Below, in pieces: positions 1 to 62,059 of a DNA stretch of 64,000 nucleotides. The translations under genes and the position numbers were made by a program. Origin of the DNA: Hypanus sabinus (lineage: Eukaryota); contig NC_082710.1 in assembly GCF_030144855.1 (NCBI RefSeq), positions 149,482,001-149,546,000 on the forward strand. The letters run 5' to 3'. Each line of letters starts with the position of its first letter. Position 1 is the stretch's first letter. The notes under the pieces were generated by a model. That model was not told the origin of the DNA and did no database searches. It saw only the letters and a program-made list of their open reading frames with translations.

Positions 1-3000
1 GCATCTAACAGTGGTAAGGAGGGCAAAGGTTCACGGACCAGGCGACCTCAGCTTTTCTCGGCTTTTTCGCTGAAGTCAGGCGTTCTTCTTAGAGCGCAGC
101 TATAACAAGTGTTCTTATTAGGACACAGAAAGAATGCGACGCAGGGCGACGATGGAAAGAAGGCGGTGAGAGCAGTGCTTCGACTTGCCGGGCTGGAATG
201 CAGAACGCTGTATGATGGTGTCCGAGGTTAGAAAGCTTACCCGGGTGAACGTGTAATAAACGTACCCAATGTCGCCCTCGCATTGAGAGACCTCTTCCTA
301 CGTGGCTGTATCATGTTGTGTGTGGATTCCAGGTTCTTTTTCCCAAAAATACACTTTATTCAGAAGTACCTCAAAATAAATTTATTTGCAAAACCCATTT
401 GTTTCCTCTGATGCTCTGTCTGTTTGTGACCTGCAGTGAGGGCAAAGTGTGCTGTGCAGCGCCATTTTGTTTGGCTAAATCGCATTAAAATGCAGGAACG
501 TATTGAAATAAAGCAAGGGTTGGTTCTAACTAATCTGGCCGGGAGCTGCCAATCATCAGGAGTGCATGGGTTTCTGGGCCAGTCGATCGCAGACCTTCTC
601 GGCAATTTGGCTGAGATCAGGCGTTCTTATTAGAGCAGAGCTATGCCAAGTGTTCTTATTAGGACACAGAGAGGAAGCGAGCCAGAGCGGCGATGGAAGA
701 AAGGATCGTTGAAAGAGGCGGGGAGTGCAGTGCTTCGACTTGTGGGACTGGAAACCAAAGCGCTGTAAGGGTAGGTGTCCTAGATTAGAAAACGTTCCTT
801 GGGGAACGGGTAATTAAGGTTCCCAATGTCGCCCTCACACTGGGAGACCACTTCCTTTGCGGATGCATCAGTTTTGGTGTGAATCGCAGGTTTTGCTAGC
901 CACAAAATACACTTTATGCAGAAATATTTCAAAATAAAGTTAATTACAAAGACCATTAGTAGACCCTGATGCTCTGTCTGGTTGTGTCCTCCAGTTAGCG
1001 CAAAGGGTGTTTTACAGCGGCGTTTTCTTTTTTAGCTAAATCGCCTTAAAATGCGCTAATGTATTGAATGAAATCAAAGGTTCTTGCAAAATGACCGGGC
1101 AGGGAGCAATCAGATGTGAAGTGGGCAAAGTTTCGCGGACCATGTGATCTCAGCTCTTCACAGCCTATTGGCTGAGATCAGGTGTTCTTATCGGAGCGCA
1201 GCTACACCAAGTCTTCATTTAGGATTGAGAACGAAAGCGACGCAGGGCGGTGATGGAAGACGATGGCGGGACAGATCAGCAGATCGGTGATAAAAGCTGA
1301 GGAGTGCAGCGCTACGACTTGCGGGGTGGGAATACAGAACGCAGTCGGATTGAGCGTCCGACTTAAGCAGGTGGGAGAACGGAGATAATACGTCTCCAAT
1401 GTCGCCCTCTCTCTGAGAGACGACTTCCTATGTGATTCCATGAGGTATTGTGTTGACCGCAGAGCTTTTAGCCCAAAAAAGTCCTATCTTCAAAAATATT
1501 CCAAATTAATGTTATTTACAAAAACCATTAGTTGACACTCATGCACTGTCCGGTTGTCTGTCACCTCCACTGAGCGCAAACAGTGCATGACAGCGGCATT
1601 TTTTTGCTAAATCACCTGAAAATGCGCTAAAATACAGAATGAAGGCAAGGATAGTACTTCCGAAGCAGGCAGGGCATCTAACAGTGGTAAGGGGGGCAAA
1701 GGTTCACGGACCAGGCGACCTCAGCTTTTCTCGGCTTTTTCGCTGAAGCCAGGCGTTCTTCTTAGAGCGCAGCAATAACAAGTGTTCTTATTAGGACACA
1801 GTACGAATGCGACGCAGGGCGGCGATGGAAAGAAGGATCGGTGAAGAAGGCGGTGAGAGCAGGGCTTCGACTTGCCGGGCTGGAATGCAAAACGCTGTAT
1901 GATGTTGTCCGAGGTTAGAAAACGTACCCGGGAGAACGTGTAATAAACGTACCCAATGTCGCCCTCGCATTGAGAGACCTCTTCCTACGTGGCTGTATCA
2001 TGTTGTGTGTGGATTCCAGGTTCTTTTTCCCAAAAATACACTTTATTCAGAAATACCTCAAAATAAATTTATTTGCAAAACCCATTTGTTTCCTCTGATG
2101 CTCTGTCTGTTTGTGACCTGCAGTGAGGGCAAAGTGTGCTGTGCAGCGCCATTTTGTTTGGCTAAATCGCATTAGAATGCAGGAACGTATTGAAATAAAG
2201 CAAGGGTTGGTTCTAACTAATCTGGCCGGGAGCTGCCAATCATCAGGAGTAAATGGGTTTCTGGGCCAGTCGATCGCAGACCTTCTCGGCAATTTGGCTG
2301 AGATCAGGCGTTCTTATTAGAGCAGAGCTATGCCAAGTGTTCTTATTAGGACACAGAGAGGAAGCGAGCCAGAGCGGCGATGGAAGAAAGGATCGGTGAA
2401 AGAGGCGGGGAGAGCAGTTCTTCGATTTGAGGGACTGGAAACCAAAACGCTGTAAGGGTAGGTGTCCTAGATTAGAAAACGTTCCTTGGGGAACGGGTAA
2501 TTAAGGTACCCAATGTCGCCCTCACACTGGGAGACCACTTCCTTTGCAGATGCATCAGTTTTGGTGTGAATCGCAGGTTTTTCTAGCCACAAAATACACT
2601 TTATGCAGAAATATTTCAAAATAAAGTTAATTACAAAGACCATTAGTAGACCCTGATGCTCTGTCTGGTTGTTTCCTCCAGTTAGCGCAAAGGGTGTTTT
2701 ACAGCGGCGTTTTTTTTTTTAGCTAAATCGCCTTAAAATGCGCTAATGTATTGAATGAAATCAAAGGTTCTTGCAAAATGACCGGGCAGGGAGCAATCAG
2801 AGGTGAAGAGGGCAAAGTTTCGCGGACCATGTGATCTCAGCTCTTCACAGCCTATTGGCTGAGATCAGGTGTTCTTATCGGAGCGCAGCTACACCAAGTC
2901 TTCATTTAGGATTGAGAACGAAAGCGATGCAGGGCGGTGATGGAAGACGATGGCGGGACAGATCAGCGGATCGGTGATAAAAGCTGAGGAGTGCAGCGCT

Positions 3001-6000
3001 ACGACTTGCGGGGTGGGAATACAGAACGCAGTCGGATTGAGCGTCCGACTTAAGCAGGTACTCTGGTCAACGGAGATAATACGTCTCCAATGTCGCCCTC
3101 TCTCTGAGAGACGACTTCCTATGTGATTCCATGAGGTATTGTGTTGACCGCAGAGCTTTTAGCCCAAAAAAGTCCTATCTTCAAAAATATTCCAAATTAA
3201 TGTTATTTACAAAAACCATTAGTTGACACTCATGCACTGTCTGGTTGTCTGTCACCTCCACTGAGCGCAAACAGTGCATGACAGCGGCATTGTTTTGCCA
3301 AATCACCTGAAAATGCACTAAAATACAGAATGAAGGCAAGGAGAGTACTTCCGAAGCAGGCAGGGCATCTAACAGTGGTAAGGAGGGCAAAGGTTCACGG
3401 ACCAGGCGACCTCAGCTTTTCTCGGCTTTTTCGCTGAAGTCAGGCGTTCTTCTTAGAGCGCAGCTATAACAAGTGTTCTTATTAGGACACAGAAAGAATG
3501 CGACGCAGGGCGACGATGGAAAGAAGGCGGTGAGAGCAGTGCTTCGACTTGCCGGGCTGGAATGCAGAACGCTGTATGATGGTGTCCGAGGTTAGAAAGC
3601 TTACCCGGGTGAACGTGTAATAAACGTACCCAATGTCGCCCTCGCATTGAGAGACCTCTTCCTACGTGGCTGTATCATGTTGTGTGTGGATTCCAGGTTC
3701 TTTTTCCCAAAAATACACTTTATTCAGAAATACCTGAAAATAAATTTGTTTGCAAAACCCATTTGTTTCTTCTGATGCTCTGTCTGTTTGTGACCTGCAG
3801 TGAGGGCAAAGTGTGCTGTGCAGCGCCATTTTGTTTGGCTAAATCGCATTAAAATGCAGGAACGTATTGAAATAAAGCAAGGGTTGGTTCTAACTAATCT
3901 GGCCGGGAGCTGCCAATCATCAGGAGTGCATGGGTTTCTGGGCCAGTCGATCGCAGACCTTCTCGGCAATTTGGCTGAGATCAGGCGTTCTTATTAGAGC
4001 AGAGCTATGCCAAGTGTTCTTATTAGGACACAGAGAGGAAGCGAGCCAGAGCGGCGATGGAAGAAAGGATCGTTGAAAGAGGCGGGGAGTGCAGTGCTTC
4101 GACTTGTGGGACTGGAAACCAAAGCGCTGTAAGGGTAGGTGTCCTAGATTAGAAAACGTTCCTTGGGGAACGGGCAATTAAGGTTCCCAATGTCGCCCTC
4201 ACACTGGGAGACCACTTCCTTTGCGGATGCATCAGTTTTGGTGTGAATCGCAGGTTTTTCTAGCCACAAAATACACTTTATGCAGAAATATTTCAAAACA
4301 AAGTTAATTACAAAGACCATTAGTAGACCCTGATGCTCTGTCTGGTTGTGTCCTCCAGTTAGCGCAAAGGGTGTTTTACAGCGGCGTTTTTTTTTTAGCT
4401 AAATCGCCTTAAAATGCGCTAATGTATTGAATGAAATCAAAGGTTCTTGCAAAATGACCGGGCAGGGAGCAATCAGAGGTGAAGAGGGCAAAGGTTCGCG
4501 GACCATGTGATCTCAGCTCTTCACAGCCTATTGGCTGAGATCAGGTGTTCTTATCGGAGCGCAGCTACACCAAGTCTTCATTTAGGATTGAGAACGAAAG
4601 CGACGCAGGGCGGTGATGGAAGACGATGGCGGGACAGATCAGCGGATCGGTGATAAAAGCTGAGGAGTGCAGCGCTACGACTTGCGGGGTGGGAATACAG
4701 AACGCAGTCGGATTGAGCGTCCGACTTAAGCAGGTACTCTGGTCAACGGAGATAATACGTCTCCAATGTCGCCCTCTCTCTGAGAGACGAGTTCCTATGT
4801 GATTCCATGCGGTATTGTGTTGACCGCAGAGCTTTTAGCCCAAAAAAGTCCTATCTTCAAAAATATTCCAAATTAATGTTATTTACAAAAACCATTAGTT
4901 GACACTCATGCACTGTCTGGTTGTCTGTCACCTCCACAGCGCAAACAGTGCATGACAGCGGCATTTTTTTGCTAAATCACCTGAAAATGCGCTAAAATAC
5001 AGAATGAAGGCAAGGATAGTACTTCCGAAGCAGGCAGGGCATCTAACAGTGGTAAGGAGGGCAAAGGTTCACGGACCAGGCGACCTCAGCTTTTCTCGGC
5101 TTTTTCGCTGAAGTCAGGCGTTCTTCTTAGAGCGCAGCTATAACAAGTGTTCTTATTAGGACACAGAAAGAATGCGACGCAGGGCGACGATGGAGAGAAG
5201 GCGGTGAGAGCAGTGCTTCGACTTGCCGGGCTGGAATGCAGAACGCTGTATGATGGTGTCCGAGGTTAGAAAGCTTACCCAGGAGAACGTGTAATAAACG
5301 TACCCAATGTCGCCCTCGCATTGAGAGACCTCTTCCAATGTGGCTGCATAATGTTGTATGTGTATCCCAGGTTCTTTTCGCCCAAAACTACACTTTATTC
5401 AGAAATACCTCAAAATAAATTTATTTACAAAACCCATTTGTTTACCCTGATTCTCTGTCTGTTTGTGACCTGCAGTGAGCGCAAAGTGTGCTGTGCAGCG
5501 GCATTTTGTTTGGCTAAATCGCATTAAAATGCACTAACGTACTGAAATAAAGCAAAGTTTGGTGCTACCTAATCTGGCAGGGAGCTGCCGATCAACAGGA
5601 GTGCATGGGTTTCTGGGCCAGTCGATACCAGCGCTTCTCGGCCTTTTGGCTGATATCAGGCGTTCTTATTAGAGCGCAGCTATAAAAGGTGTCCTTATTA
5701 GGACACAGAGAGGAAGCGACGCAGAGCGGCGATGGAAAAAAGGATCGGTGAAAAAGGTGGGGAGAGCAGTGCTTCGACTTGTGGGACTGGAAACCAAAAC
5801 GCTGAAAGGGTAGGTATCCGAGATTAATAAACGTTCCTTGGAGAACGGGTAATTAAGGTACCCAATGTCGCCCTCACCCTGAGACACCTCTTCTTTTGCG
5901 GATGCATGAGTTATGGTGTGAATCGCAGGTTTTTCTTACCACAAAATACACTTTATTCAGAAATATTTCAAAATAAAGTTATTTACAAAGACCATTAGTA

Positions 6001-6800: not shown

Positions 6801-9800
6801 TCTTAGAGCGCAGCTATAACAAGTGTTCTTATTAGGACACAGAAAGAATGCGACGCAGGGCGACGATGGAGAGAAGGCGGTGAGAGCAGTGCTTCGACTT
6901 GCCGGGCTGGAATGCAGAACGCTGTATGATGGTGTCCGAGGTTAGAAAGCTTACCCAGGAGAACGTGTAATAAACGTACCCAATGTCGCCCTCACATTGA
7001 GGAACGTCTTCCTACGTGGCTGTATCACGTTGTGTGTGGATCCCAGGTTCTCTTAGCTCAAAAATACACTTTATTCAGAAATACCTCAAAATAAATTTAT
7101 TTACAAAAACCATTTGTTTACCCTGATGCTCTGTCTGCTTGTGACATCTAATGAGCGCAAAGTGTGCTGTGCAGCGGCATTTTGTTTGGCTAAATCGCAT
7201 TTACGTACACTAACGTATTGAAATAAAGCAAAGATTGGTGCAAACTAATCTGGCAGGGAGCTGTCAATCATCAGGAGTGCATGGGGTCCTGGGCCAGTCG
7301 ATCTTAGCACTTCTCGACATTTTGGCTGAGATCAGGCGTTCTTATTTGAGCAGAGCTATAACAGGTGTTCTTATTAGGACACAGAGAGGAAGCGAGCCAG
7401 AGCGGCGATGGAAGAAAAGATCGTTGAAAGAGGCGGGGAGTGCAGTGCTTCGATTTGCCCGGCTGGAATGCAGAACGCTGTATGATGCTGTCCGAGGTTA
7501 GTAAACGTACCCAGGAGAACGTTTAATAAACGTACCCAATGTGGCCCTCGCATTGAGAGATCTCTTCCAATGTGGCTGCATCATGTTGTGTGTGTATCCC
7601 AGGTTCTTTTCGCCACAAAATACACTTTATTCAGAAATACCTCAAAATAAATTTATTTACAAAAACCATTTGTTTCCTCTGATGCTCTGTCTGTTTGTGA
7701 CCTGCAGTGAGGGCAAAGTGTGCTGTGCAGCGCCATTTTTTTTGGCTAAATCGCATTAAAATGCAGGAACGTATTGAAATAAAGCAAGGGTTGGTTCTAA
7801 CTAATCTGACCGGGAGCTGCCAATCATCAGGAGTACATGGGTTTCTGGGCCAGTCGATCGCAGACCTTCTCGGCAATTTGGCTGAGATCAGGCGTTCTTA
7901 TTAGAGCAGAGCTATGCCAAGTGTTCTTATTAGGACACAGAGAGGAAGCGACGCAGAGCGCCGATGGAAAAAAGGATCGGTGAAAGAGGCGGGGAGAGCA
8001 GTGCTTCGATTTGAGGGACTGGAAACCAAAACGCTGTAAGGGTAGGTGTCCGAGATTACAAAACGTTCCTTGGACAACGGGTAATAAACGTACCCAGTGT
8101 CGCCCTCACATTGAGAAACCTCTTCCCACGTGGCTGTATCATGTGTGTGGATCCCAGGTTCTTTCGCCCAAAACTACACTTTATTCAGAAATACCTCAAA
8201 ATAAATTTATTTACAAAAACCATTTGTTTACTCTGATGCTCTGTCTGTTTGTGAAATCTAATGAGTGCAAAGTGTGCTGTGCAGCGGCATTTTGTTTGGC
8301 TAAATCGCATTTAAGCAGGGCGGTGATGGAAGAAAGGATCGGTGAAAGTGGCGTGGAGAGCAGTGATTCGACTTGAGGGACTGGAAACCACAGCGCTGTA
8401 AGGGGAGGTGTCCTAGATTAGAAAACGTTCCTTGGAGAACGGGTAATTAAAGTACCCAATGTAGACCTCACCTTGAGAGACCTCTTCCTTTGCGGATGCA
8501 TCAGTTTTGGCGTGAATCGCAGGTTTTTCTAGCCACAAAATACACTTTATGCAGAAATATTTCAAAATAAAGTTAATTACAAAGACCATTAGTAGACCCT
8601 GATGCTCTGTCTGGTTGTGTCCTCCAGGTAGCGCAAAGGGCGATTTACAGCGGCGTTTTTTTTTTTGGCTAAATCGCCTTAAAATGCGCTAACGTATTGA
8701 ATGAAATCAAAGGTTCGTGTGAAATGACCGGGCAGGGAGCAATCAGAGGTGAAGAGGGCAAAGGTTCGCGGACCATGTGATCTCAGCTCTTCACAACCTG
8801 TTGGCTGAGATCAGGCGTTCTTATCAGAGCACAGCTATTCCAAGTCTTCATTTAGGATTGAGAACGAAAGCGACGCAGGGCGGTGATGGATGAGGATGGA
8901 GGACAGATCAGCGGATCGGTGATGAAGGCCAAGGAGTGCAGCGCTACTACTTGCGGGCTGGGAATACTGAACGCAGTCGGATTGGGCGACCGACTTTAGC
9001 AGGTACCCTGGTCAACGGAGATGAGACGTCCCCAATATCGCCCTCTCCCTGAGAGACGACTTTCGATGTGATTCCATGAGGTTTTGTGTTGACCGCACAG
9101 CTTTTAGCCCAAAACAGTCCTATCTTCAAAAAATATTCCAAATTAATGAAATTTACAAAAACCATTGGTTGACACTCATGCACTGTCTGGTTGTCTATCA
9201 CCTCCACAGCGCAAACAGTGCATGACAGCGGCATTTTTTTGCTAAATCACTTTAAAATGCGCTGAAATACAGAATGAAGGCAAGGCGAGTACTTCCGAAG
9301 CTGGCAGGGCAACTAACTGTGGTAAGGAGGGCAAAGGTTCACGGACCAGGCGACCTCAGCTTTTCTCGGCCATTTGGCTGAGATCAGGCGTTCTTCTTAG
9401 AGCGCAGCTATAACAAGTGTTCTTATTAGGACGCAGTACGAATGCGACGCAGGGCGGCGATGGAAAGAAGGATCGGTGAAGAAAGCGGTGAGAGCAGGGC
9501 TTCGACTTGCCGGGCTGGAATGCAAAACGCTGTATGATGTTGTCCGAGGTTAGAAAACGTACCCAGGAGAAAGTGTAATAAACGTACCCAATGTCACCCT
9601 CACATTGAGAGACCTCTTCCAATGTGGCTGCATAATGTTGTATGTGTATCCCAAGTTCTTTTCGCCCAAAACTACACTTTATTCAGAAATACCTCAAAAT
9701 AAATTTATTTACAAAAACCATTTGTTTACTCTGATGCTCTGTCTGCTTGTGACATCTAATGAGCGCACAGTATGCTGTGCAGCGGCATTTTGTTTGGCTA

Positions 9801-18800: not shown

Positions 18801-21800
18801 GGGAGCTTTCAATGATCAGGAGTGCATGGGGTCCTGGGCCAGTCGATCTTAGCCCTTCTCGGCATTTTGGCTGATATCAGGCGTTGTTATTAGAGCAGAG
18901 CTATAACAGGTGTTATTAGGACACAGAGAGGAAGCGACGCAGAGCGGCGATGGAAGAAAGGATCGGTGAAAGAGGCGGGGAGAGCAGTGCTTCGACTTGA
19001 GGGACTGGAAACCACAGCGCTGTAAGGGTAGGTGTCCTAGATTAGAAAACGTTCCTTGGAGAACGGGTAATTAACGGGTAACCCAATGTAGACCTCACCT
19101 TGAGAGACCTCTTCCTTTGCGGATGCATCAGTTTTGGTGTGAATCGCAGGTTTTTCTAGCCACAAAATACACTTTATGCAGAAATATTTCAAAATAAAGT
19201 TAATTACAAACACCATTAGTAGACCCTGATGCTCTGTCTGGTTGTGTCCTCCAGTTATCGCAAAGGGTGTTTTACAGCGGCGTTTTTTTTTGCTAAATCG
19301 CCTTGAAATGCGCTAATGTATTGAATGAAATCAAAGGTTCGTGCGAAATGACCGGGCAGGGAGCAATCAGAGGTGAAGAGGGCAAAGGTTCGCGGACCAT
19401 GTGATCTCAGCTCTTCACGGCCTATTGGCTGAGATCAGGCGTTCTTATCAGAGCGCAGCTATACCAAGTCTTCATTTAGGATTGAGAACGAAAGCGACGC
19501 AGGGCGGTGATGGACGAGGATGGAGGACAGATCAGCAGGTCGGTGATGAAGGCCGAGGAGTGCAGCGCTACTACTTGCGGGCTGGGAATACTGAACGCAG
19601 TCGGATTGGGCGACCGTCTTTAGCAGGTACCCTGGTCAACGGAGATGAGACGTCCCCAATATCGCCCTCTCCCTGAGAGACGACTTTCGATGTGATTCCA
19701 TGAGGTTTTGTGTTGACCGCACAGCTTTTAGCCCAAAACAGTCCTATCTTCAAAAAATATTCCAAATTAATGAAATTTACAAAAACCATTAGTTGACACT
19801 CATGCACTGTCTGGTTGTCTATCACCTCCACAGCGCAAACAGTGCATGACAGCGGCATTTTTTTGCTAAATCACTTTAAAATGCGCTGAAATACAGAATG
19901 AAGGCAAGGCGAGTACTTCCGAAGCAGGCAGGGCATCTAACAGTGGTAAGGAGGGCAAAGGTTCACGGACCAGGCGACCTCAGCTTTTCTCGGCCATTTG
20001 GCTGAGATCAGGCGTTCTTCTTAGAGCGCAGCTATAACAAGTGTTCTTATTAGGACACAGTACGAATGCGACGCAGGGCGGCGATGGAAAGAAGGATCGG
20101 TGAAGAAAGCGGTGAGAGCAGGGCTTCGACTTGCGGGGCTGGAATGCAGAACGCTGTATGATGGTGTCCGAGGTTAGAAAACGTACCCAGGAGAAAGTGT
20201 AATACACGTACCCAATGTCACCCTCACATTGAGAGACCTCTTCCAATGTGGCTGCATAATGTTGTATGTGTATCCCAGGTTCTTTTCGCCCAAAACTACA
20301 CTTTATTCAGAGATACCTCAAAATAAATTTATTTACAAAAACCATTTGTTTACTCTGATGCTCCGTCTGCTTGTGGCATCTAATGAGCGCACAGTATGCT
20401 GTGCAGCGGCATTTTGTTTGGCTAAATCGATTTCAAATACACTAACGTATTGAAATAAAGCAAAGATTGGTGCAAACTAATCTGGCAGGGAGCTGTCAAT
20501 CATCAGGAGTGCATGGGGTCCTGGGCCAGTCGATCTTAGCCCTTCTCGACATTTTGGCTGAGATCAGGCGTTCTTATTAGAGCAGAGCTATGCCAAGTGT
20601 CCTTATTAGGACACAGAGAGGAAGCGAGCCAGAGCGGCGATGGAAGAAAGGATCGTTGAAAGAGGCGGGGAGTGCAGTGCTTCGACTTGTGGGACTGGAA
20701 ACCAAAGCGCTGTAAGGGTAGGTGTCCTAGATTAGAAAACGTTCCTTGGAGAACGGGTAATTAACGGGTAACCCAATGTAGACCTCACCTTGAGAGACCT
20801 CTTCCTTTGCGGATGCATCAGTTTTGGTGTGAATCGCAGGTTTTTCTAGCCACAAAATACACTTTATGCAGAAATATTTCAAAATAAAGTTAATTACAAA
20901 CACCATTAGTAGAACCTGATGCTCTGTCTGGTTGTGTCCTCCAGTTAGCGCAAAGGGTGTTTTACAGCGGCGTTTTTTTTTTTGCTAAATCGCCTTAAAA
21001 TGCGCTAATGTATTGAATGAAATCAAAGGTTCGTGCGAAATGACCGGGCAGGGAGCAATCAGAGGTGAAGAGGGCAAAGGTTCGCGGACCATGTGATCTC
21101 AGCTCTTCACGGCCTATTGGCTGAGATCAGGCGTTCTTAGCAGAGCGCAGCTATACCAAGTCTTCATTTAGGATTGAGAACGAAAGCGACGCAGGGCGGT
21201 GATGGACGAGGATGGAGGACAGATCAGCAGGTCGGTGATGAAGGCCGAGGAGTGCAGCGCTACTACTTGCGGGCTGGGAATACTGAACGCAGTCGGATTG
21301 GGCGACCGTCTTTAGCAGGTACCCTGGTCAACGGAGATGAGACGTCCCCAATATCGCCCTCTCCCTGAGAGACGACTTTCGATGTGATTCCATGAGGTTT
21401 TGTGTTGACCGCACAGCTTTTAGCCCAAAACAGTCCTATCTTCAAAAAATATTCCAAATTAATGAAATTTACAAAAACCATTAGTTGACACTCATGCACT
21501 GTCTGGTTGTCTATCACCTCCACAGCGCAAACAGTGCATGACAGCGGCATTTTTTTGCTAAATCACTTTAAAATGCGCTGAAATACAGAATGAAGGCAAG
21601 GCGAGTACTTCCGAAGCAGGCAGGGCATCTAACAGTGGTAAGGAGGGCAAAGGTTCACGGACCAGGCGACCTCAGCTTTTCTCGGCCATTTGGCTGAGAT
21701 CAGGCGTTCTTCTTAGAGCGCAGCTATAACAAGTGTTCTTATTAGGACACAGTACGAATGCGACGCAGGGCGGCGATGGAAAGAAGGATCGGTGAAGAAA

Positions 21801-30800: not shown

Positions 30801-33800
30801 CTGAACGCAGTCGGATTGGGCGACCGTCTTTAGCAGGTACCCTGGTCAACGGAGATGAGACGTCCCCAATATCGCCCTCTCCCTGAGAGACGACTTTCGA
30901 TGTGATTCCATGAGGTTTTGTGTTGACCGCACAGCTTTTAGCCCAAAACAGTCCTATCTTCAAAAAATATTCCAAATTAATGAAATTTACAAAAACCATT
31001 AGTTGACACTCATGCACTGTCTGGTTGTCTATCACCTCCACAGCGCAAACAGTGCATGACAGCGGCATTTTTTTGCTAAATCACTTTAAAATGCGCTGAA
31101 ATACAGAATGAAGGCAAGGCGAGTACTTCCGAAGCAGGCAGGGCATCTAACAGTGGTAAGGAGGGCAAAGGTTCACGGACCAGGCGACCTCAGCTTTTCT
31201 CGGCCATTTGGCTGAGATCAGGCGTTCTTCTTAGAGCGCAGCTATAACAAGTGTTCTTATTAGGACACAGTACGAATGCGACGCAGGGCGGCGATGGAAA
31301 GAAGGATCGGTGAAGAAAGCGGTGAGAGTAGGGCTTCGACTTGCCGGGCTGGAATGCAGAACGCTGTATGATGGTGTCCGAGGTTAGAAAACGTACCCAG
31401 GAGAAAGTGTAATACACGTACCCAATGTCACCCTCACATTGAGAGACCTCTTCCAATGTGGCTGCATAATGTTGTATGTGTATCCCAGGTTCTTTTCGCC
31501 CAAAACTACACTTTATTCAGAGATACCTCAAAATAAATTTATTTACAAAAACCATTTGTTTACTCTGATGCTCCGTCTGCTTGTGGCATCTAATGAGCGC
31601 ACAGTATGCTGTGCAGCGGCATTTTGTTTGGCTAAATCGATTTCAAATACACTAACGTATTGAAATAAAGCAAAGATTGGTGCAAACTAATCTGGCAGGG
31701 AGCTGTCAATCATCAGGAGTGCATGGGGTCCTGGGCCAGTCGATCTTAGCCCTTCTCGACATTTTGGCTGAGATCAGGCGTTCTTATTAGAGCAGAGCTA
31801 TGCCAAGTGTCCTTATTAGGACACAGAGAGGAAGCGAGCCAGAGCGGCGATGGAAGAAAGGATCGTTGAAAGAGGCGGGGAGTGCAGTGCTTCGACTTGT
31901 GGGACTGGAAACCAAAGCGCTGTAAGGGTAGGTGTCCTAGATTAGAAAACGTTCCTTGGAGAACGGGTAATTAAGGTACCCAATGTCGCCCTCACACTGG
32001 GAGACCACTTCCTTTGCGGATGCATCAGTTTTGGTGTGAATCGCAGGTTTTTCTAGCCACAAAATACACTTTATGCAGAAATATTTCAAAATAAAGTTAA
32101 TTACAAAGACCATTAGTAGACCCTGATGCTCTGTCTGGTTGTGTCCTCCAGTTAGCGCAAAGGTGTTTTACAGCGGCTTTTTTTTTTTTTAGCTAAATCG
32201 CCTTAAAATGCGCTAATGTATTGAATGAAATCAAAGGTTCTTGCAAAATGACCGGGCAGGGAGCAATCAGAGGTGAAGAGGGCAAAGGTTCGCGGACCAT
32301 GTGATCTCAGCTCTTCACAGCCTATTGGCTGAGATCAGGCGTTCTTATCAGAGCGCAGCTACACCAAGTCTTCATTATAATTGAGAACGAAAGCGACGCA
32401 GGGCGGTGATGGAAGACGATGGCGGGACAGATCAGCGGATCGGTGATAAAAGCTGAGGAGTGCAGCGCTACGACTTGCGGGGTGGGAATACAGAACGCAG
32501 TCGGATTGAGCGTCCGACTTAAGCAGGTACTCTGGTCAACGGAGATAATACGTCCCCAATGTCGCCCTCTCTCTGAGAGACGACTTCCTATGTGATTCCA
32601 TGAGGTATTGTGTTGACCGCACAGCTTTTAGCCCAAAAAAGTCCTAGCTTCAAAAATATTCCAAATTAATGTTATTTACAAAAACCATTAGTTGACACTC
32701 ATGCACTGTCTGGTTGTCTGTCACCTCCACGGAGCGCAAACAGTGCATGACAGCGGCATTTCTTTGCTAAATCACATTAAAATGCGCTGAAATACAGAAT
32801 GAAGGCAAGGAGAGTACTTCCGAAGCAGGCAGGGCATCTAACTGTGGTAATGAGGGCAAAGGTTCACGGACCAGGCGACCTCAGCTTTTCTCGGCTTTTT
32901 CGCTGAAGTCAGGCGTTCTTCTTAGAGCGCAGCTATAACAAGTGTTCTTATTAGGACACAGAAAGAATGCGACGCAGGGCGACGATGGAGAGAAGGCGGT
33001 GAGAGCAGTGCTTCGACTCGCCGGGCTGGAATGCAGAACGCTGTATGATGGTGTCCGAGGTTAGAAAACGCACCCAGGAGAACGTGTAATAAACGTACCC
33101 AATGTCGCCCTCGCATTGAGAGACCTCTTCCAATGTGGCTGCATCATGTTGTGTGTGTATCCCAGGTTCGTTTTCCCGAAAATACACTTTATTCAGAAAT
33201 TCCTCAAAATAAATTTATTTGCAAAACCCATTTGTTTCCTCTGATGCTCTGTCTGTTTGTGACCTGCAGTGAGGGCAAAGTGTGCTGTGCAGCGACATTT
33301 TGTTTGGCTAAATCGCATTAAAATGCAGGAACGTATTGAAATAAAGCAAGGGTTGGTTCTAACTAATCTGACCGGGAGCTGCCAATCATCAGGAGTACAT
33401 GGGTTTCTGGGCCAGTCGATCGCAGACCTTCTCGGCAATTTGGCTGAGATCAGGCGTTCTTATTAGAGCAGAGCTATGCCAAGTGTTCTTATTAGGACAC
33501 AGAGAGGAAGCGACGCAGAGCGCCGATGGAAAAAAGGATCGGTGAAAGAGGCGGGGAGAGCAGTGCTTCGATTTGAGGGACTGGAAACCAAAACGCTGTA
33601 AGGGTAGGTGTCCTAGATTACAAAACGTTCCTTGGACAACGGGTAATTAACGTACCCAGTGTCGCCCTCACATTGAGAAACCTCTTCCCACGTGGCTGTA
33701 TCATGTGTGTGGATCCCAGGTTCTTTTAGCTCAAAAATACACTTTATTCAGAAATACCTCAAAATAAATTTATTTACAAAAACCATTTGTTTACCCTGAT

Positions 33801-36299
33801 GCTCTGTCTGCTTGTGACATCTAATGAGCGCAAAGTGTGCTGTGCAGCGGCATTTTGTTTGGCTAAATCGCATTTAAGTACACTAACATAGTGAAATAAA
33901 GCAAAGATTGTTGCAAACTAATCTGGCAGGGAGCTGTCAATCATCAGGAGTGCATGGGGTCCTGGGCCAGTCGATCTTAGCACTTCTCGGCATTTTGGCT
34001 GATATCAGGCGTTGTTATTAGAGCAGAGCTATAACAGGTGTTCTTATTAGGACACAGAGAGGAAGCGACGCAGAGCGGCGATGGAAGAAAGGATCGGTGA
34101 AAGAGGCGGGGAGAGCAGTGCTTCGACTTGAGGGACTGGAAAACACAGCGCTGTAAGGGTAGGTGTCCTAGATTAGAAAACGTTCCTTGGAGAACGGGTA
34201 ATTAACGGGTAACCCAATGTAGACCTCACCTTGAGAGACCTCTTCCTTTGCGGATGCATCAGTTTTGGTGTGAATCGCAGGTTTTTCTAGCCACAAAATA
34301 CACTTTATGCAGAAATATTTCAAAATCAAGTTAATTACAAACACCATTAGTAGACCCTGATGCTCTGTCTGGTTGTGTCCTCCAGTTAGCGCAAAGGGTG
34401 TTTTACAGCGGCGTTTTTTTTTGCTAAATTGCCTTAAAATAAGCTAATGTATTGAATGAAATCAAAGGTTCTTGCAAAATGACCGGGCAGGGAGCAATCA
34501 GAGGTGAAGAGGGCAAAGGTTGGCGGACCATGTGATCTCAGCTCTTCACAGCCTATTGGCTGAGATCAGGCGTTCTTATCAGAGCGCAGCTACACCAAGT
34601 CTTCATTATAATTGAGAACGAAAGCGACGCAGGGCGGTGATGGAAGACGATGGCAGGACAGATCAGCGGATCGGTGATAAAAGCTGAGGAGTGCAGCGCT
34701 ACGACTTGCGGGGTGGGAATACAGAACGCAGTCGGATTGAGCGTCCGACTTAAGCAGGTACTCTGGTCAACGGAGATAATACGTCCCCAATGTCGCCCTC
34801 TCTCTGAGAGACGACTTCCTATGTGATTCCATGAGGTATTGTGTTGACCGCACAGCTTTTAGCCCAAAAAAGTCCTAGCTTCAAAAATATTCCAAATTAA
34901 TGTTATTTACAAAAACCATTAATTGACACTCATGCACTGTCTGGTTGTCTATCACCTCCACAGCGCAAACAGTGCATGACAGCGGCATTTTTTTGCTAAA
35001 TCACTTTAAAATGCGCTGAAATACAGAATGAAGGCAAGGCGAATACTTCCGAAGCAGGCAGGGCATCTAACAGTGGTAAGGTGGGCAAAGGTTCACGGAC
35101 CAGGCGACCTCAGCTTTTCTCGGCCATTTGGCTGAGATCAGGCGTTCTTCTTAGAGCGCAGCTATAACAAGTGTTCTTATTAGGACACAGTACGAATGCG
35201 ACGCAGGGCGGCGATGGAAAGAAGGATCGGTGAAGAAAGCGGTGAGAGCAGGGCTTCGACTTGCCGGGCTGGAATGCAGAACGCTGTATGATGTTGTCTG
35301 AGGTTAGAAAGCTTACCCAGGAGAAAGTGTAATAAACGTACCCAATGTCACCCTCACATTGAGAGACCTCTTCCAATGTGGCTGCATAATGTTGTATGTG
35401 TATCCCAGGTTCTTTTCGCCCAAAACTACACTTTATTCAGAAATACCTCAAAATAAATTTATTTACAAAAACCATTTGTTTACTCTGAAGCTCTGTCTGC
35501 TTGTGACATCTAATGAGCGCAAAGTGTGCTGTGCAGCGGCATTTTGTTTGGCTAAATCGCATTTAAGTACACTAACGTAGTGAAATAAAGCAAAGGTTGG
35601 TGCAAACTAATCTGGCAGGGAGCTGTCAATCATCAGGAGTGCATGGGGTCCTGGGCCAGTCGATCTTAGCCCTTCTCGACATTTTGGCTGAGATCAGGCG
35701 TTCTTATTAGAGCAGAGCTATGCCAAGTGTTCTTATTAGGACACAGAGAGGAAGCTACGCAGAGCGCCGATGGAAAAAAGGATCGGTGAAAGAGGCGGGG
35801 AGAGCAGTGCTTCGATTTGAGGGACTGGAAACCAAAACGCTGTAAGGGTAGGTGTCCGAGATTAGAAAACGTTCCTTGGAGAACGGGTAATTAAGGTACC
35901 CAATGTCGCCCTCACACTGGGAGACCACTTCCTTTGCGGATGCATCAGTTTTGGTGTGAATCGCAGGTTTTTCTAGCCACAAAATACACTTTATGCAGAA
36001 ATATTTCAAAATAAAGTTAATTACAAACACCATTAGTAGACCCTGATGCTCTGTCCGGTTGTGTCCTCCAGTTAGCGCAAAGGGTGTTTAACAGCAACCT
36101 TTTTTTTTAGCTAAATCGCCTTAAAATGCGCTAATGAATTGAATGAAATCAAAGGTTCATGCAAAATGACCGGGCAGGGAGCAATCAGAGGTGAAGAGGG
36201 CAAAGGTTCGCGGACCATGTGATCTCAGCTCTTCACAGCCTATTGGCTGAGATCAGGCGTTCTTATCAGAGCGCAGCTACACCAAAGTCTTCATTTAGG

Positions 36300-42800: not shown

Positions 42801-44031
42801 TGTCCTCCAGTTATCGCAAAGGGTGTTTTACAGCGGCGTTTTTTTTTTGCTAAATCGCCTTGAAATGCGCTAATGTATTGAATGAAATCAAAGGTTCGTG
42901 CGAAATGACCGGGCAGGGAGCAATCAGAGGTGAAGAGGGCAAAGGTTCGCGGACCATGTGATCTCAGCTCTTCACAGCCTATTGGCTGAGATCAGGCGTT
43001 CTTATCAGAGCGCAGCTATACCAAGTCTTCATTTAGGATTGAGAACGAAAGCGACGCAGGGCGGTGATGGATGAGGATGGCCGGACAGATCAGCAGATCG
43101 GTGATGAAGGCCGAGGAGTGCAGCGCTACTACTTGCGGGCTGGAAATACAGAACGCAGTCGGATTGAGCGTCCGACTTAAGCAGGTACTCTGGTCAACGG
43201 AGATAATACGTCCCCAATATCGCCCTCTCTCTGAGAGACGACTTCCTATGCGATTCCATGAGGTTTTGTGTTGACCACAGAGATTTTACCCCAAAAAAAG
43301 TCCGATCTTCAAAAATATTCCAAATTAATGTTATTTACAAAAACCATTAGTTGACACTCATGCACTGTCTGGTTGTCTGTCACCTCCACTGAGCGCAAAC
43401 AGTGCATGACAGCGGCATTTTTTTGCTAAATCTCCTGAAAATGCGCTGAAATACAGAATGAAGGCAAGGATAGTACTTCCGAAGCAGGCAGGGCAACTAA
43501 CAGTGGTAATGAGGGCAAAGGTTCACGGACCAGGCGACCTCAGCATTTCTCGGCCTTTTGGCTGAGATCAGGCGTTCTTCTCAGAGCGCAGCTATAACAA
43601 GTGTTCTTATTAGGACACAGAAAGAATGCGACGCAGGGCAGCGATGGAAAGAAGGATCGGTGAAGAAGGCGGTGAGAGCAGGGCTTCGACTTGCCGGGCT
43701 GGAATGCAGAACGCTGTATGATGGTGTCCGAGGTTAGAAAACTTACCCAGATGAACGTGTAATAAACGTACCCAATGTCGCCCTCACATTGAGAAACCTC
43801 TTCCTACGTGGCTGTATCATGTTGTGTGTGGATCTCAGGTTCTTTTGCCCAAAAATACACTTTATTCAGAAATACCTCAAAATAAATTTATTTGCAAAAC
43901 CCATTTGTTTACTCTGATTCTCTGTCTGTTTGTGACCTGCAGTGAGGGCAAAGTGTGCTGTGCACCGGCATTTTGTTTGGCCAAATCACATTTAAGTACA
44001 CTAACGTAGTGAAATAAAGCAAAGGTTGGTG

Positions 44032-44097
44032 CTACCTAATCTGGCAGGGAACTGCCGATCATCAGGAGTGCATAGGTTCCTGGGCCAGTCGATCCCA
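44032..44097 (+). pseudogene. U1 snRNA 5' fragment (nt ~1-65) inside a satellite monomer (representative best copy; a version is present in essentially every monomer)
   Basis: 44041-44097 CTGGCAGGGAACTGCCGATCATCAGGAGTGCATAGGTTCCTGGGCCAGTCGATCCCA aligns ungapped to U1 nt 9-65 at 60654-60710 with 45/57 identities (hand count). Confidence 0.88.
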
Positions 44098-44168
44098 GCG
44101 CTTCTCGGCCTTTTGGCTGAGATCAGGCGTTCTTATTAGAGCGCAGCTATAACAAGTGGTCTTATTAG
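44097..44168 (+). pseudogene. U2 snRNA 5' fragment (nt 1-34 joined to 44-52) plus a second partial copy, inside a satellite monomer (representative copy)
   Basis: AGCGCTTCTCGGCCTTTTGGCTGAGATCAGGCGT matches the vertebrate U2 5' end ATCGCTTCTCGGCCTTTTGGCTAAGATCAAGTGT at 30/34. It continues TCTTAT(T/C)AG (U2 TCTTATCAG). CAAGTG(T/G)TCTTATTAG repeats 29 bp later. Confidence 0.88.
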
Positions 44169-47100
44169 GACACAGAGAGGAAGCGACGCAGAGCGGCGAT
44201 GGAAGAAAGGATCGGTGAAAGAGGCGGGGAGAGCAGTGCTTCGATTTGAGGGACTGGAAACCAAAACGCTGTAAGGGTAGGTGTCCGAGATTACAAAACG
44301 TTCCTTGGACAACAGGTAATGAAGTTAGCCAATATCGCCCTCACCCTGCGACACCTCTTCCTTTGTGGATGCATGTGGTTGAGTGTGGTTCCCAGGTTCT
44401 CTTAGCCCAAAAAATACAGTTCATTCAGAAATATTGGAAAGGAAAGTAATTTAGAAAAACCATTTGTTTACTCTGATGTTCTGTCTGTCTATTAACGCCA
44501 GTGAGTGCAAAGTGTGCTGTGTCGCGGAATTTTCGTTGGCTAAATCGCATTAAAATGCACAAACGTATTGAAAGAAGACAAAGGTAGGTACTATCTAATT
44601 TGGCAGCGAGCTGTCAATCATCAGGAGTGCATAGATTTCTGGGCCAGTCGATCCCAGCGCTTCTCGGCCTTTTGGCTGACATCAGGCGTTCTTATTAGAG
44701 CAGAGCTATGACAAGTGTTCTTATTAGGACACAGAGAGGAAGCGGCGATGGAAAAAAGGATCGGTGAAAGAGTCGGGGAGAGCAGTGCTTCGATTTGAGG
44801 GACTGGAAACCAAAACGCTGTAAGGGTAGGTGTCCGAGATTAGACAACGTTCCTTGGAGAACGGGTAATTAAGGTACCCAATGTCGCCCTCACCCTGAGA
44901 CACCTCTTCCTTTGTGGATGCATGAGTTATGGTGTGAATCGCAGGTTTTTCTAGCCACAAAATACACTTTATTCAGAAATATTTCAAAATAAAGTTATTT
45001 ACAAAGACCATTAGTAGACCCTGATGCTCTGTCTGGTTGTGTCCTCCAGTTAGCGCAAAGGGTGTTTTACAGCGGCGTTTTTTTTTTAGCTAAATCGCCT
45101 TAAAATGCGCTAATGTATTGAATGAAATCAAAGGTTCGTGCGAAATGACCGGGCAGGGAGCAATCAGAGGTGAAGAGGGCAAAGGTTCGCGGAACATGTG
45201 ATCTCAGCTCTTCACAGCCTATTGGCTGAGATCAGGCGTTCTTATCAGAGCGCAGCTACACCAAGTCTTCATTTAGGATTGAGAACGAAAGCGACGCAGG
45301 GCGGTGATGGATGAGGATGGCCGGACAGATCAGCAGATCGGTGATGAAGGCCGAGGAGTGCAGCGCTACTACTTGCGGGCTGGAAATACAGAACGCAGTC
45401 GGATTGAGCGTCCGACTTAAGCAGGTACTCTGGTCAACGGAGATAATACGTCCCCAATATCGCCCTCTCTCTGAGAGACGACTTCCTATGCGATTCCATG
45501 AGGTTTTGTGTTGACCACAGAGATTTTACCCCAAAAAAAGTCCGATCTTCAAAAATATTCCAAATTAATGTTATTTACAAAAACCATTAGTTGACACTCA
45601 TGCACTGTCTGGTTGTCTGTCACCTCCACTGAGCGCAAACAGTGCATGACAGCGGCATTTTTTTGCTAAATCACATTAAAATGCGCTGAAATACAGAATG
45701 AAGGCAAGGATAGTACTTCCGAAGCAGGCAGGGCATCTAACTGTGGTAATGAGGGCAAAGGTTCACGGACCAGGCGACCTCAGCATTTCTCGGCCTTTTG
45801 GCTGAGATCAGGCGTTCTTCTCAGAGCGCAGCTATAACAAGTGTTCTTATTAGGACACAGAAAGAATGCGACGCAGGGCAGCGATGGAAAGAAGGATCGG
45901 TGAAGAAGGCGGTGAGAGCAGGGCTTCGACTTGCCGGGCTGGAATGCAGAACGCTGTATGATGGTGTCCGAGGTTAGAAAACGTACCCAGGAGAAAGTGT
46001 AATACACGTACCCAATGTCACCCTCACATTGAGAGACCTCTTCCAATGTGGCTGCATAATGTTGTATGTGTATCCCAGGTTCTTTTCGCCCAAAACTACA
46101 CTTTATTCAGAGATACCTCAAAATAAATTTATTTACAAAAACCATTTGTTTACTCTGATGCTCCGTCTGCTTGTGACATCTAATGAGCGCAAAGTGTGCT
46201 GTGCAGCGGCATTTTGTTTGGCTAAATCGATTTCAAATACACTAACGTATTGAAATAAAGCAAAGATTGGTGCAAACTAATCTGGCAGGGAGCTGTCAAT
46301 CATCAGGAGTGCATGGGGTCCTGGGCCAGTCGATCTTAGCCCTTCTCGACATTTTGGCTGAGATCAGGCGTTCTTATTAGAGCAGAGCTATGCCAAGTGT
46401 CCTTATTAGGACACAGAGAGGAAGCGAGCCAGAGCGGCGATGGAAGAAAGGATCGTTGAAAGAGGCGGGGAGTGCAGTGCTTCGACTTGTGGGACTGGAA
46501 ACCAAAGCGCTGTAAGGGTAGGTGTCCTAGATTAGAAAACGTTCCTTGGAGAACGGGTAATTAAGGTACCCAATGTCGCCCTCACACTGGGAGACCACTT
46601 CCTTTGCGGATGCATCAGTTTTGGTGTGAATCGCAGGTTTTTCTAGCCACAAAATACACTTTATGCAGAAATATTTCAAAATAAATTATTTACAAAGACC
46701 ATTAGTAGACCCTGATGCTCTGTCTGGTTGTGTCCAGTTAGCGCAAAGGGTGTTTTACAGCGGCGTTTTCTTTGGCTAAATCGCCTTAAAATGCGCTAAT
46801 GCATTGGATGAAATCAAAGGTTCCTACGAACAGACCGGAGAGGGAGCTATCAGAGGTGAAAAGGGCAAAGGCTCCCGGAACAGGCGATCCCAGCGTTTCT
46901 CGGCCTTTTGGCTGAGATCAGGCGTTCTTCTTAGAGCGCAGCTGTAACAAGTGTTCTTATTAGGACACAGAAAGAATGCGACGCAGGGCGGCGATGGAAA
47001 GAAGGATCGGTGAAGAAGGCGGTGAGAGCAGGGCTTCGACTTGCCGGGCTGGATTGCGGAACGTTGTATGACAGAGTGTCCGAGGTCAGAAAACGTACAT

Positions 47101-49613
47101 AGGAGAACGTGGAGTAAATGTAACCAATGTCTCCCTCACCTTGAGAGACCTCTTCCTATGTGGCTGCATCAGGTTGTGTGTGGATCCCAGGTTCTCTTAG
47201 CCCAAAAATACACTTTCTTCTGAAATATTTCAAAATAAATTAATTTACAACCACCATTTGTTTACTCTCATGCTCTGTCTGTTTGTGACCTCCAGTGAGC
47301 GCAAAGTGTGCTGTGCAGCGGCATTTTGTTTGGCGAAATCGCATTAAAATGCACTAACGTATTGAAAGAAAGCAAAGGTTGGTACTAACTAATCTGGCAG
47401 GGAGCTGTCAATCATCAGGATTGCATGGGTTCCTGAGCCAGTCGATCCCAGCGCTTCTCGTACTTTTGTCCGAGATCAGGCGTTCTTATTAGAGCGCAGC
47501 TATAACGAGTGTTCTTATTCGGACACTGAGAGAGAACGACGCAGAACGGCGATGGAAAAAGTATCGGTAAAGAAGGCCGGGAGGGCAGTGCTTCGACTTG
47601 CGGGACTGGAAACCACAGCGCTGTAAGGCCAGGTGTCCGAGGTTAGACAACGTTCCTTGGACAACGGGTAATAAAGGTACTCAATGTTGCCCTTTACCCT
47701 GAGAGACCTCTTCCTTTGTGGATGCATCAGTTTTGGTGTGAATTGCCGGTTTGTTTTTAGCCACAAAAGACGCTTTATTCAGAAATAATTCAGTATAAAG
47801 TTATTTACAAAGACCATTAGTTGACTCTGATGCTCTGTCTGTCTGTGTCCTCCAGTTAGCGCAAAGGGTGTTTCACAGCGTCATTTTTATTTTTGGCTGA
47901 ATCGCTTTAAAATGCGCTAATATATTGAATGAAATCAAAGGTTCGTGCAAAATGACCGGGCAGGGAGCAATCAGAGGTGAAAAGGCAAAGGTTCGCGGAC
48001 CATGTGATCTCAGCTCTTCACAGCCTATTGGCTGAGATCAGGCGTTCTTATCAGAACGCAGCTATACCAAGTGTTCATTTAGGATTGAGAACGAAAGCGA
48101 CGCAGCTTGGTGATGGAAAAGAGGATGGCGGGACAGATCCGCGGATCGGTGATGAAGGCCGGGGAGTGCAGCGCTACGTCTTAAGGGGCAGGAATAGAGA
48201 ACGCAGTCAGATTGAGCGTCCGAGGTTAGTTGGTGTCCCGGACAAGGGAGATGATATGTCCCGAATGCCGGCCTCTCCCTGAGAGACGACTTCCTATGTG
48301 ACTGCATCAGGTTTTGTGTTGACCGCAGATCTTTTAGCCCGAAAAGTGTCCTATCTTTAGAAATATTCCAAATTAATGATATTTACAAAAACCATTATTT
48401 GACACTCATGCACTGTCTGGTTGTCTGTCACCTCCAATTAGCGCAAACAGTGCATGACCGCGGCATTCTTTTGCTAAATCGATTTATAATGCGCTAAAAT
48501 ACATAACGAAGGCAAAGATCGTATTACCTAACGAGGCAGGGCGCTATCAGTGGTCAGGATGCAAAGGTTAGCTGACCAGGCGATCTCAGCGTTTCTCGGC
48601 CTTTTGGATGAGATCAGGCGTTCTTCTCAGAGCGCAGCTATAACAAGTGTTCTTATTAGGACACAGAAAGAATGCGACGCAGGGCGACGATGGAAAGAAG
48701 GCGGTGAGAGCAGTGCTTCGACTCGCCGGGCTGGAATGCAGAACGCTGTATGATGGTGTCCGAGGTTAGAAGCCGGTACCCTGGACAGTGGGAAAACTCG
48801 TCCCCAATGTCGCCCTCACGCGGTGGGAAGGCTTCGTATGTGTCTGCATCAGGTTTCGTGTGAATCCCACAGTTTTTTTTTCAAAATAATTTACTTTATT
48901 GAGAAGTATTCCAAAGTAATATTATTTACCAAAACCATTAGTTGACTCTCAGTCCTTATCTGTTTAGTACTAAAATTCTCATGCTCTGTTTCTCTGTTTG
49001 TGACCCCCAATTAGCGCATTACAGCGGCACTTATATTTGGCTAAAATGCGCTAACTTCCAGAATGCCGGCAAAGGTCAGGGTTATATACGTATAAAACTA
49101 TTTATTCACCAAAATCAACAGCTCCGTTTTCACCTGAGGGCCGATCCGCCATCATGGAAATCGGTCCGCCACACCACTACGCATGCGCACGGCCAGCCTC
49201 AGCAGCTGCCCCAAGCGGAGCCAAAGGGCAGGGCAGTTCTATTTTGACTCCCTCCAGGAGTGCACCAACGGGTCACCCCGTTGTCTACTTCACAATAAAG
49301 ATGTTTGCAATAAATTATTCGTTGACTCTCAAACCCCTAGTCAGGAATAAAACCTATTTACAATTAAACTCTTTACAACAAAACAAGGCGTTGACTCTCA
49401 TTGCTTTACAGTCTTGTGGCTGTATAATGAGCAAATCTGACCTGGATTGTAATCACTTGGGAGCAAGTGACTATTATAAAGGTTGCAGCCACTCCTGTGG
49501 CACTATGTTGATTCATCTATCCACACCGCTGATGAGGGGTATACTCCTCACCATCCGACCCCTCCCACCCCCGGGGTTGACGAACCCTAAACTGGACCTT
49601 CCGCAATGGGCCT

Positions 49614-49692
49614 TGGTACACAAAACGCTGGTGGAAAGCCGCAGGCCAGGCAGCATAGGAAGAGTCGACGTTTCGGGCCGAGACCTTTCGAC
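49614..49692 (-). mobile_element. Penelope-associated repeat fragment with truncated minimal hammerhead-like motif
   Basis: The minus strand reads CGAAAGGTCTCGGCCCGAAACGTCGACTCTTCCTATGCTGCCTGGCCTGC, the same family as 54,222-54,325. Confidence 0.55.
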
Positions 49693-50950: not shown

Positions 50951-50974
50951 TGGTCATTAGAAATTAAAGGGAAC

Positions 50975-62035: not shown

Positions 62036-62059
62036 GACGCCGCACGAAAAGGAGAAGTA

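Follow-up and report, generated by a model that had tools for sequence, protein, structure and literature searches.

A U1/U2-headed stingray satellite as a probable mosaic of fragments of a Keno-like, U2-targeting LINE

The subject of this report is a 64,000-nucleotide stretch of the genome of the stingray Hypanus sabinus (NCBI RefSeq assembly GCF_030144855.1, contig NC_082710.1, positions 149,482,001 to 149,546,000 of the forward strand; hereafter the window), the first 49 kb of which are occupied by a tandem array of ~558-bp units (1..49082, + strand). The original prediction for this DNA was that the array is a satellite built from a fusion of two spliceosomal small nuclear RNAs (snRNAs), U1 and U2. 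Our analysis upholds the presence of U1 and U2 sequence in the head of the unit, but the U2 part corresponds to the head of a Keno-like long interspersed nuclear element (LINE), and positions 58-439 of the unit appear to be derived from that LINE. We accordingly propose that fragments of a Keno-like, U2-targeting LINE make up the unit as a mosaic, with nt 3-65 of U1 capping its 5' side, a reading to which we give a probability of about 0.8.

A repeat unit that opens with U1 and U2 sequence

Using a single monomer (44040-44598) as the nhmmer query over the whole window, we recovered 88 consecutive monomers in head-to-tail orientation on the + strand, from 14 to 49082, in keeping with the predicted large satellite whose monomer opens with U1 and then U2 5' sequence. 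Apart from a single deleted copy, every monomer head consists of a stretch colinear with U1 nt 3-65 followed by the 5' end of U2, and one ungapped register of the head is common to the four main subtypes of the monomer, as had been asserted for all subtypes. The match counts reported earlier were likewise reproduced: 44041-44097 agrees with a U1 gene of the window (60654-60710) at 45 of 57 ungapped positions, and 44097-44130 agrees with the U2 5' end at 30 of 34, as counted on the first 34 nt of the U2 head of a related LINE (locus L003, see below). On the head of another such locus (L005), which has two changes of its own, the latter count is 29 of 34. A consensus of all monomers is closer to U1 and U2 than any single subtype, with 50/63 ungapped matches to U1 nt 3-65 and 24/25 matches to U2 nt 4-29 (z 18.7 and 14.5, respectively, against shuffles), and it approximates the ancestor of the unit.

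A profile of the monomer in turn recovers both real U1 genes of the window (E 1.4e-5 and 1e-4); outside the array, the single-monomer query matches only the first ~68 nt of the same two genes (E 5e-5 and 3e-4). A comparison with the Rfam models and with shuffled controls had been proposed as a check on the snRNA origin of the head. The head stands out clearly against the shuffles, but not by the Rfam thresholds: the U1 model (RF00003, gathering score 69.5 bits) yields no array match even at E<=10, and the best array scores of the U2 model (RF00004, gathering score 46 bits) are 24.4 and 22.2 bits. Because the Rfam U1 and U2 scores lie below threshold, we consider the heads to be snRNA-derived fragments and not snRNA genes.

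The U1 piece begins at most 2 nt from the mature 5' end of U1, and the U2 piece at most 3 nt from that of U2. As for the notion that the switch between them occurred at a microhomology, the U2 5' end does resemble U1 loop II; the overlap at the junction amounts to at most 'AT' (U1 nt 65-66 = U2 nt 1-2), and the best-kept copies have one substitution there. Of all monomers, 44040-44598 is the best preserved, and its outer U1 module (U1 nt 3-65) is found at 44035..44097 on the + strand (monomer positions 554-558 and 1-57). The outer U2 module, which is the LINE head, follows at 44097..44139 (+ strand; monomer 58-100) and, when aligned to the L005 head, comprises U2 nt 1-33 joined to nt 43-52. 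The lost nt 34-42 span both the GUAGUA that binds the branch point and the insertion site at nt 38/39. The head carries a 'CAGGA' loop variant, as does the local U1, the corresponding motif in the U1 module of the Mobula LINE being 'CACGA'. Since this variant is present, we derive the outer U1 module from a stingray-type U1; between the two local U1 copies, the consensus head shows no preference (score 61 vs 59).

LINE fragments behind the head

The monomer profile also matches seven loci that we fetched for further analysis, with E values down to 2e-19: three from Mobula hypostoma (L001-L003), one each from M. birostris (L006) and Cetorhinus maximus (L007), one from an ENA assembly (L004) and one from a Logan run (L005). 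Using these alignments, we were able to show that monomer positions 58-439 are homologous to a Keno-like LINE, of which they contain the head, the 5' untranslated region (UTR), the start of the first open reading frame (ORF1), a piece of ORF2 and an inverted 3' UTR.

Directly behind the outer head, older and decayed modules take up 44140..44168 (+ strand; monomer 101-130), namely a spacer followed by a second copy of U2 nt 29-33 + 43-52. This region, with its second 'AAGTG + TTCTTATTAG', matches the inner head of L001 at 41 of 50 positions (z 14.7). When aligned directly to U1, the spacer gives no significant match; a chain of alignments nevertheless relates it to the inner U1 piece (nt ~50-66) in the head of the Mobula LINE, with the L001 inner head aligning to L002 (z 8.0) and L002 in turn to U1 nt 33-66 (27/33, z 9.7). 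Read in this manner, the monomer head would be four-layered, comprising U1, U2, a decayed U1 and a decayed U2, with the inner U1 layer being contributed by the chained alignments.

Further downstream lie the LINE 5' UTR and about the first 27 codons of ORF1, with the start codon lost (44169..44299, + strand; monomer 131-260). These were delineated by alignment to L001 and L003, with monomer 47-257 matching L001 at E 2.4e-17 and monomer 120-260 matching L003 at z 11.5. They are succeeded by a 97-bp internal fragment of ORF2 (44300..44396, + strand; monomer 261-357), which corresponds to positions ~4220-4316 of the L002 LINE in its ORF2 coding region and is matched in five loci with E values of 1e-10 to 2e-19. 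The end of the LINE 3' UTR comes next in inverted orientation (44397..44479, - strand; monomer 358-439), so that its poly(A) reads as a T-run. The last 119 bp of the unit (44480..44598, without an assigned strand; monomer 440-558), which we term segment X, lie just upstream of the next U1 head. We sought a source for this segment in the LINE, the LINE 3' UTRs and 5' flanks, the window flank and the U1 promoter regions, and obtained no significant match (z <= 1.4 for the U1 promoters). A weak, gappy similarity to window positions 53832-53910 was seen for monomer 389-474, which spans the inverted 3'-UTR end and the start of segment X.

The parent element in rays and sharks

A HMMER search with a 136-amino acid (aa) piece of ORF1 from the window flank recovered six protein matches, and the four of these that were looked up are all ZCCHC3-like ORF1 proteins of M. 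hypostoma and M. birostris. Further searches uncovered copies of the LINE in the horn shark, basking shark and sawshark. In this family, ORF1 displays two ZCCHC3-type RNA-binding domains along with CCHC knuckles, and ORF2 combines an apurinic/apyrimidinic-type (APE) endonuclease, a reverse transcriptase and a zf-RVT domain. The copy at L002 from M. hypostoma is a nearly complete element with an ORF1 of 483 aa, an ORF2 with the Exo_endo_phos, RVT_1 and zf-RVT domains and a 3' UTR that ends in AATAAA and poly(A). The order of APE endonuclease followed by reverse transcriptase that marks the ORF2 of the Keno/Tx1 clade is observed in L002 and its relatives, and we term the ray and shark element Keno-like because it has the APE and not a restriction-like endonuclease. 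The ORF2 relatives of L002 are endonuclease-reverse transcriptase proteins from frogs, salamanders, teleosts and the lancelet, and one of them, with 43% identity, goes by the name 'transposon TX1 uncharacterized 149 kDa protein'. A 204-aa database protein (P0003) combines a fragment of the LINE ORF1 RNA-binding domain with an entire core histone fold, and probably results from a gene model that was fused across a LINE insertion.

The 5' ends of these LINEs start with U2 sequence of varying extent: nt 1-28 in L001, nt 1-29 in L002, nt 1-34 in L007 (Rfam U2 37.1 bits, E 5e-6), nt 1-52 in L003 and L005 and nt ~5-52 in L006. In L002 the head is itself composite (L002:9822-9903, OY992599.1), with U2 nt 1-29 and U1 nt ~30-66 joined at a shared GATCA and followed by a decayed U2 piece. 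This U2-U1-U2 order is the reverse of that in the outer head of the stingray monomer.

The U2 sequence downstream of Utopia insertions is known to start at nt 39, and the 3' flanks of Keno are identical (PMC4640811). A 3' flank starting from U2 nt 39 was found twice in L003 and once in L007. The first of these loci (L003:640-13002, Mobula hypostoma OY992602.1) holds three head-to-tail copies of the LINE that are ~5.16 kb apart: the first copy opens with U2 nt 1-52, and the other two are preceded by poly(A) and U2 nt 39-52, after which the 5' UTR begins. In the second (L007:10820-10900, Cetorhinus maximus CAXMLO010000991.1), U2 nt 39-66 directly follow the LINE poly(A), and this points to entry of the element into a shark U2 gene copy at nt 38/39. 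These arrangements show U2 nt 38/39 to be the insertion point of new copies, whether the target is a U2 gene or the U2 head of a copy already in place; L001 and L002, for their part, sit at non-U2 sites. As the target site lies inside the element's own head, new copies can insert into old heads, thereby building tandem LINEs.

Architecture and homogenization of the array

The array is non-coding satellite DNA that extends past the left edge of the window and has a size of at least 49 kb. Tandem Repeats Finder (TRF) is blind to it because the longest period of that program is 500. The monomers range from 542 to 577 bp in length, with the exception of the deleted copy noted in the original prediction, which we place at 8315..8718 (+ strand). 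It matches only positions 149-550 of the monomer model and is head-less, since model positions 1-148 are missing; the copy preceding it stops at position 515.

Clustering resolved the monomers into subtypes A (24 copies), B (24), C (23) and E (10), along with seven one-off variants, namely the deleted copy and six full-length monomers that are mostly near the right edge. Subtype E is a hybrid with a B-like 5' half and an A-like 3' half. Identity is 94-97% within subtypes and 68-85% between them, and the subtypes are arranged into higher-order units of the form ABC (~1.69 kb) and AEBC (~2.24 kb). The array has the makeup of a satellite with higher-order repeats, in that these units are 94-100% identical to one another and their constituent subtypes are 15-32% apart. 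Among monomers 66-77, the 4-monomer units are 100% identical. On a larger scale, a block of nine monomers is duplicated at a distance of 17 monomers (window 21616-26650 vs 31134-36169), with 99.8-100% identity in seven of the nine monomers and 98.6% and 99.1% in the other two; this is either a very recent segmental duplication inside the array or an assembly duplication. In contrast to this core, the right-edge monomers 80 and 85-88 are divergent, with 75-88% identity to their nearest relatives. A homogenized core bordered by older, decayed edges fits a satellite evolving by unequal exchange.

Origin of the unit and alternative explanations

Under the scenario that we favor, the U2 head of the parent LINE would have come from co-transcription with the U2 target or from homology-guided 5' joining to that target. 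The U1 modules would have been added when the reverse transcriptase, on arriving at the 5' end of the RNA, switched template onto the U1 snRNA at a short homology, a step that we model on proposals for the crocodilian SINEU and Tx1-Mar elements. By analogy with these, we view template switching with reasonable, if not high, confidence as the likeliest route of the U1 cap. A single rearranged locus of nested, deleted LINE copies might then have been amplified through unequal exchange and segmental duplication, such that three diverged subtypes arose first and the 3- and 4-monomer units later, some of which are now 100% identical.

Several points weigh against this scenario or parts of it. U1 sequence upstream of the U2 head is absent in all three Mobula heads examined (L001-L003, with L005-L007 left out of this comparison), and the outer U1-U2 junction is known from the array alone and could be unique to it. 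The inner U1 module of the monomer comes solely through chained alignments and not from a direct match. The inverted 3' UTR, like the 119 bp that remain unexplained, shows that the unit did not arise as a single straightforward retrocopy, and one window does not suffice to put its rearrangements in order. Finally, the placement of the parent in the Tx1 clade is founded on domain order, the target site and one TX1-named match rather than a tree, and 'Keno-like' is to be read in that sense.

The main rival for the origin of the U1 cap is capture at the DNA level, whereby nt 1-65 of a neighboring U1 gene would have been joined in place by illegitimate recombination to a U2 gene or a U2-headed element, with subsequent local amplification. 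Its appeal lies in proximity, with the two U1 copies lying 4.9 kb and 11.6 kb from the array, and in the head having the loop variant of the local U1 and not that of the Mobula LINE. The resemblance of U1 loop II to the U2 5' end would also suit such a recombination, as would the weak likeness of monomer 389-474 to the region from -143 to -65 of the U1 copy at 53976 (z 5.3, which is within the shuffle range). However, under either of two scoring schemes the 119 bp upstream of the U1 head do not resemble the promoter block that is conserved between the two local U1 genes (z <= 1.4); correspondingly, the nhmmer match to these genes stops at the head. Moreover, both the U1 and the U2 pieces start near the 5' ends of the mature RNAs, as is predicted by RNA copying but not by a random DNA break, and neither local U1 copy is favored by the consensus. 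A short-homology junction between U2 and U1 is also present in the Mobula LINE, on another chromosome. Taken together, we consider birth of the unit at the DNA level to be unlikely, albeit the strongest of the alternatives to copying from RNA.

A different possibility is that the array owes its tandem form not to unequal exchange but to a short, non-autonomous SINEU-like element that repeatedly inserted into itself by site-specific retrotransposition. The parent LINE does build head-to-tail arrays via its own U2 head, as at L003, and tandem SINEU insertions have been reported (PMC4494074). Nevertheless, the U2 modules of the monomer are without nt 34-42 and so without the target site, there is no poly(A) at the monomer junction, with the sole A-run being internal and inverted, and identical stretches that span several monomers (2.2 kb and ~5 kb) point to segmental amplification. 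Such self-insertion consequently strikes us as a poor explanation for the array, and far less plausible than amplification of a rearranged locus by unequal exchange.

Least credible of all is that the repeat is retained because its snRNA-like heads serve a function, such as giving rise to transcripts that bind proteins of the small nuclear ribonucleoprotein or acting as a source locus of small RNAs. Conservation between subtypes is highest in the U2-derived stretch and the 70 bp behind it (0.79-0.84 vs 0.71 overall) and the observed/expected CpG ratio is fairly high at 0.82, but conservation is lowest in the U1 part (0.59-0.74), the 5' splice-site pairing region, the Sm site and GUAGUA are mutated or absent, and the Rfam scores are far under threshold. 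Selection on RNA structure was rejected on comparing the subtype consensi with the Rfam structure line, as A, B and C each disrupt U2 stem I with substitutions of their own. Judging by the loss of the splice-site-pairing, Sm and branch-point sequences and the free decay of the stems, no snRNA function would be expected of the heads.

The flanking DNA and the local U1 genes

The region to the right of the array is likewise populated by remnants of the LINE family. The last monomer is abutted by an inverted 3' end of the same family (49090..49615, - strand), of which 49286-49615 matches LINE positions 5059-5327 (E 1.5e-26); the 3'-UTR motif was found at 49286-49416, and 49090-49286 was assigned by eye. 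It is followed by a 5'-truncated and internally deleted LINE copy (49694..53206, + strand; LINE matches E 6e-59 and 7e-53) that contains the ORF1 RNA-binding domains (RBD_ZCCHC3_2nd, E 1.4e-7), pieces of the APE endonuclease (50570-50990; Exo_endo_phos, E 3e-4) and the C-terminus of ORF2.

Only two sequences in the window pass the Rfam gathering threshold for U1, both on the + strand: a full-length U1 snRNA gene at 60646..60809 (155.7 bits) and a U1 snRNA gene copy at 53976..54141 (113 bits). The latter is probably a variant or a pseudogene, because its Sm-site region is changed and its 3' end is divergent. Both read AUCAGGA(A/G)G in loop I, where the U1 module of the Mobula LINE has CACGAAG, and they have in common upstream blocks from about -75 to -1 and from about -270 to -230. 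A 5'-truncated 3' fragment of the LINE lies 84 bp downstream of the U1 gene (60893..61175, + strand), and similar 5'-truncated 3' fragments are found on the + strand at 54677-54863, 57786-57905, 62037-62434 and 62608-62961. Either a preference for insertion at this locus or an old tandem unit may account for the five + strand fragments that are interspersed with the U1 genes. Close to the right end of the window, adjacent (AT)21 and (TG)15 microsatellites were observed at 63705-63775.

Relationship to previously described systems

The original prediction correctly pointed to the crocodilian SINEU/Tx1 and the Keno elements as the relevant precedents. In crocodilians, SINEU-2 has a 5' U1 and a 3' U2 part, SINEU-1 bears repeated 5' additions of U1/U2, and Tx1-Mar LINEs have U1 or U2 heads, which have been attributed to template switching (Kojima 2015, PMC4494074). 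The stingray unit resembles these in having U1 5' of U2, repeated 5' additions, short-homology junctions and a link to Keno-related Tx1 elements; even the extent of U2 is comparable, with the first 32 nt retained in SINEU-3 (PMC4494074) and the first 33 in the stingray monomer. Like a SINEU, the monomer has a 5' region derived from U1 or U2; unlike one, it has no poly(A) at the 3' end of the unit, as there is no A-run in monomer 440-558. It further differs in that its host is a ray, no SINEU being reported outside crocodilians in that study (PMC4494074), and in being a tandem unit with ORF fragments and an inverted 3' UTR, which is known here from the array alone and not as dispersed copies.

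Keno, to go by the papers that cite its description, also has an APE-type endonuclease with a reverse transcriptase and downstream U2 sequence starting at nt 39 (Kojima and Fujiwara 2004, as cited in PMC4494074 and PMC4640811). Its hosts in these accounts are fish, frogs and the lancelet, which match the nearest ORF2 relatives of the ray LINE. Measured against these accounts, the ray element is distinguished from Keno by the many copies that lie outside U2 genes and carry the U2 head along, and by composite U2/U1 heads, which do not figure in the description of Keno given by the citing papers.

A satellite with U2-derived sequence has a precedent in U2_sat of Ciona, which is derived from U2 genes and associated with U2-targeting non-LTR elements (PMC4640811). 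As far as that account goes, the two differ in that the U2 of the stingray repeat arrived within the 5' end of a LINE, accompanied by U1 and by fragments of the LINE body. In mammals, L1 is reported to generate chimeric retrocopies that have an snRNA sequence as their 5' part and a different transcript behind it (Buzdin 2002 and Garcia-Perez 2007, as cited in PMC4494074). Per that citation, these are similar in the 5' joining of an snRNA by template switching of the reverse transcriptase, but unlike the stingray repeat they are single dispersed retrocopies, being neither the heads of families nor satellites.

The novelty of the repeat is hence narrower than originally claimed, because SINEU-2 and the Tx1-Mar heads (PMC4494074) and the Ciona U2 satellite (PMC4640811) have already been described; satellites derived from transposable elements, a U2-derived satellite and U1/U2-headed Tx1 elements are all known. 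As to the claim that the family is undescribed, our literature search found no described snRNA-derived satellite of a stingray. What appears to be undescribed in the searchable literature is threefold: U1/U2 heads in cartilaginous fishes, a four-layer U1/U2 head, and the amplification of a U1/U2 head with fragments of a LINE body to a satellite array that measures at least 49 kb and neighbors U1 genes.

Significance

In practical terms, the array should be masked as a LINE-derived satellite in annotation, and its U1/U2-like heads should be taken neither for snRNA genes nor for pseudogenes. On the reading favored here, the odd 'U1-U2 fusion satellite' is explained as a by-product of a target-specific retrotransposon. 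These observations extend the snRNA-headed Tx1-type elements, which in 2015 were reported only from crocodilians, to rays and sharks, and the Mobula locus L003 offers a concrete case of a U2-specific LINE that can form tandem arrays because its head contains the target sequence. It is conceivable, though we hold it to be doubtful, that 5' capping with U1/U2 segments is an old and recurrent property of the whole Keno/Tx1-Mar lineage, spanning cartilaginous fishes and crocodilians. If this were true, the snRNA caps might help the element, either by providing homology for 5' joining at snRNA-gene targets or through read-through from snRNA promoters, and U1/U2 heads could seed large satellites next to snRNA gene clusters.

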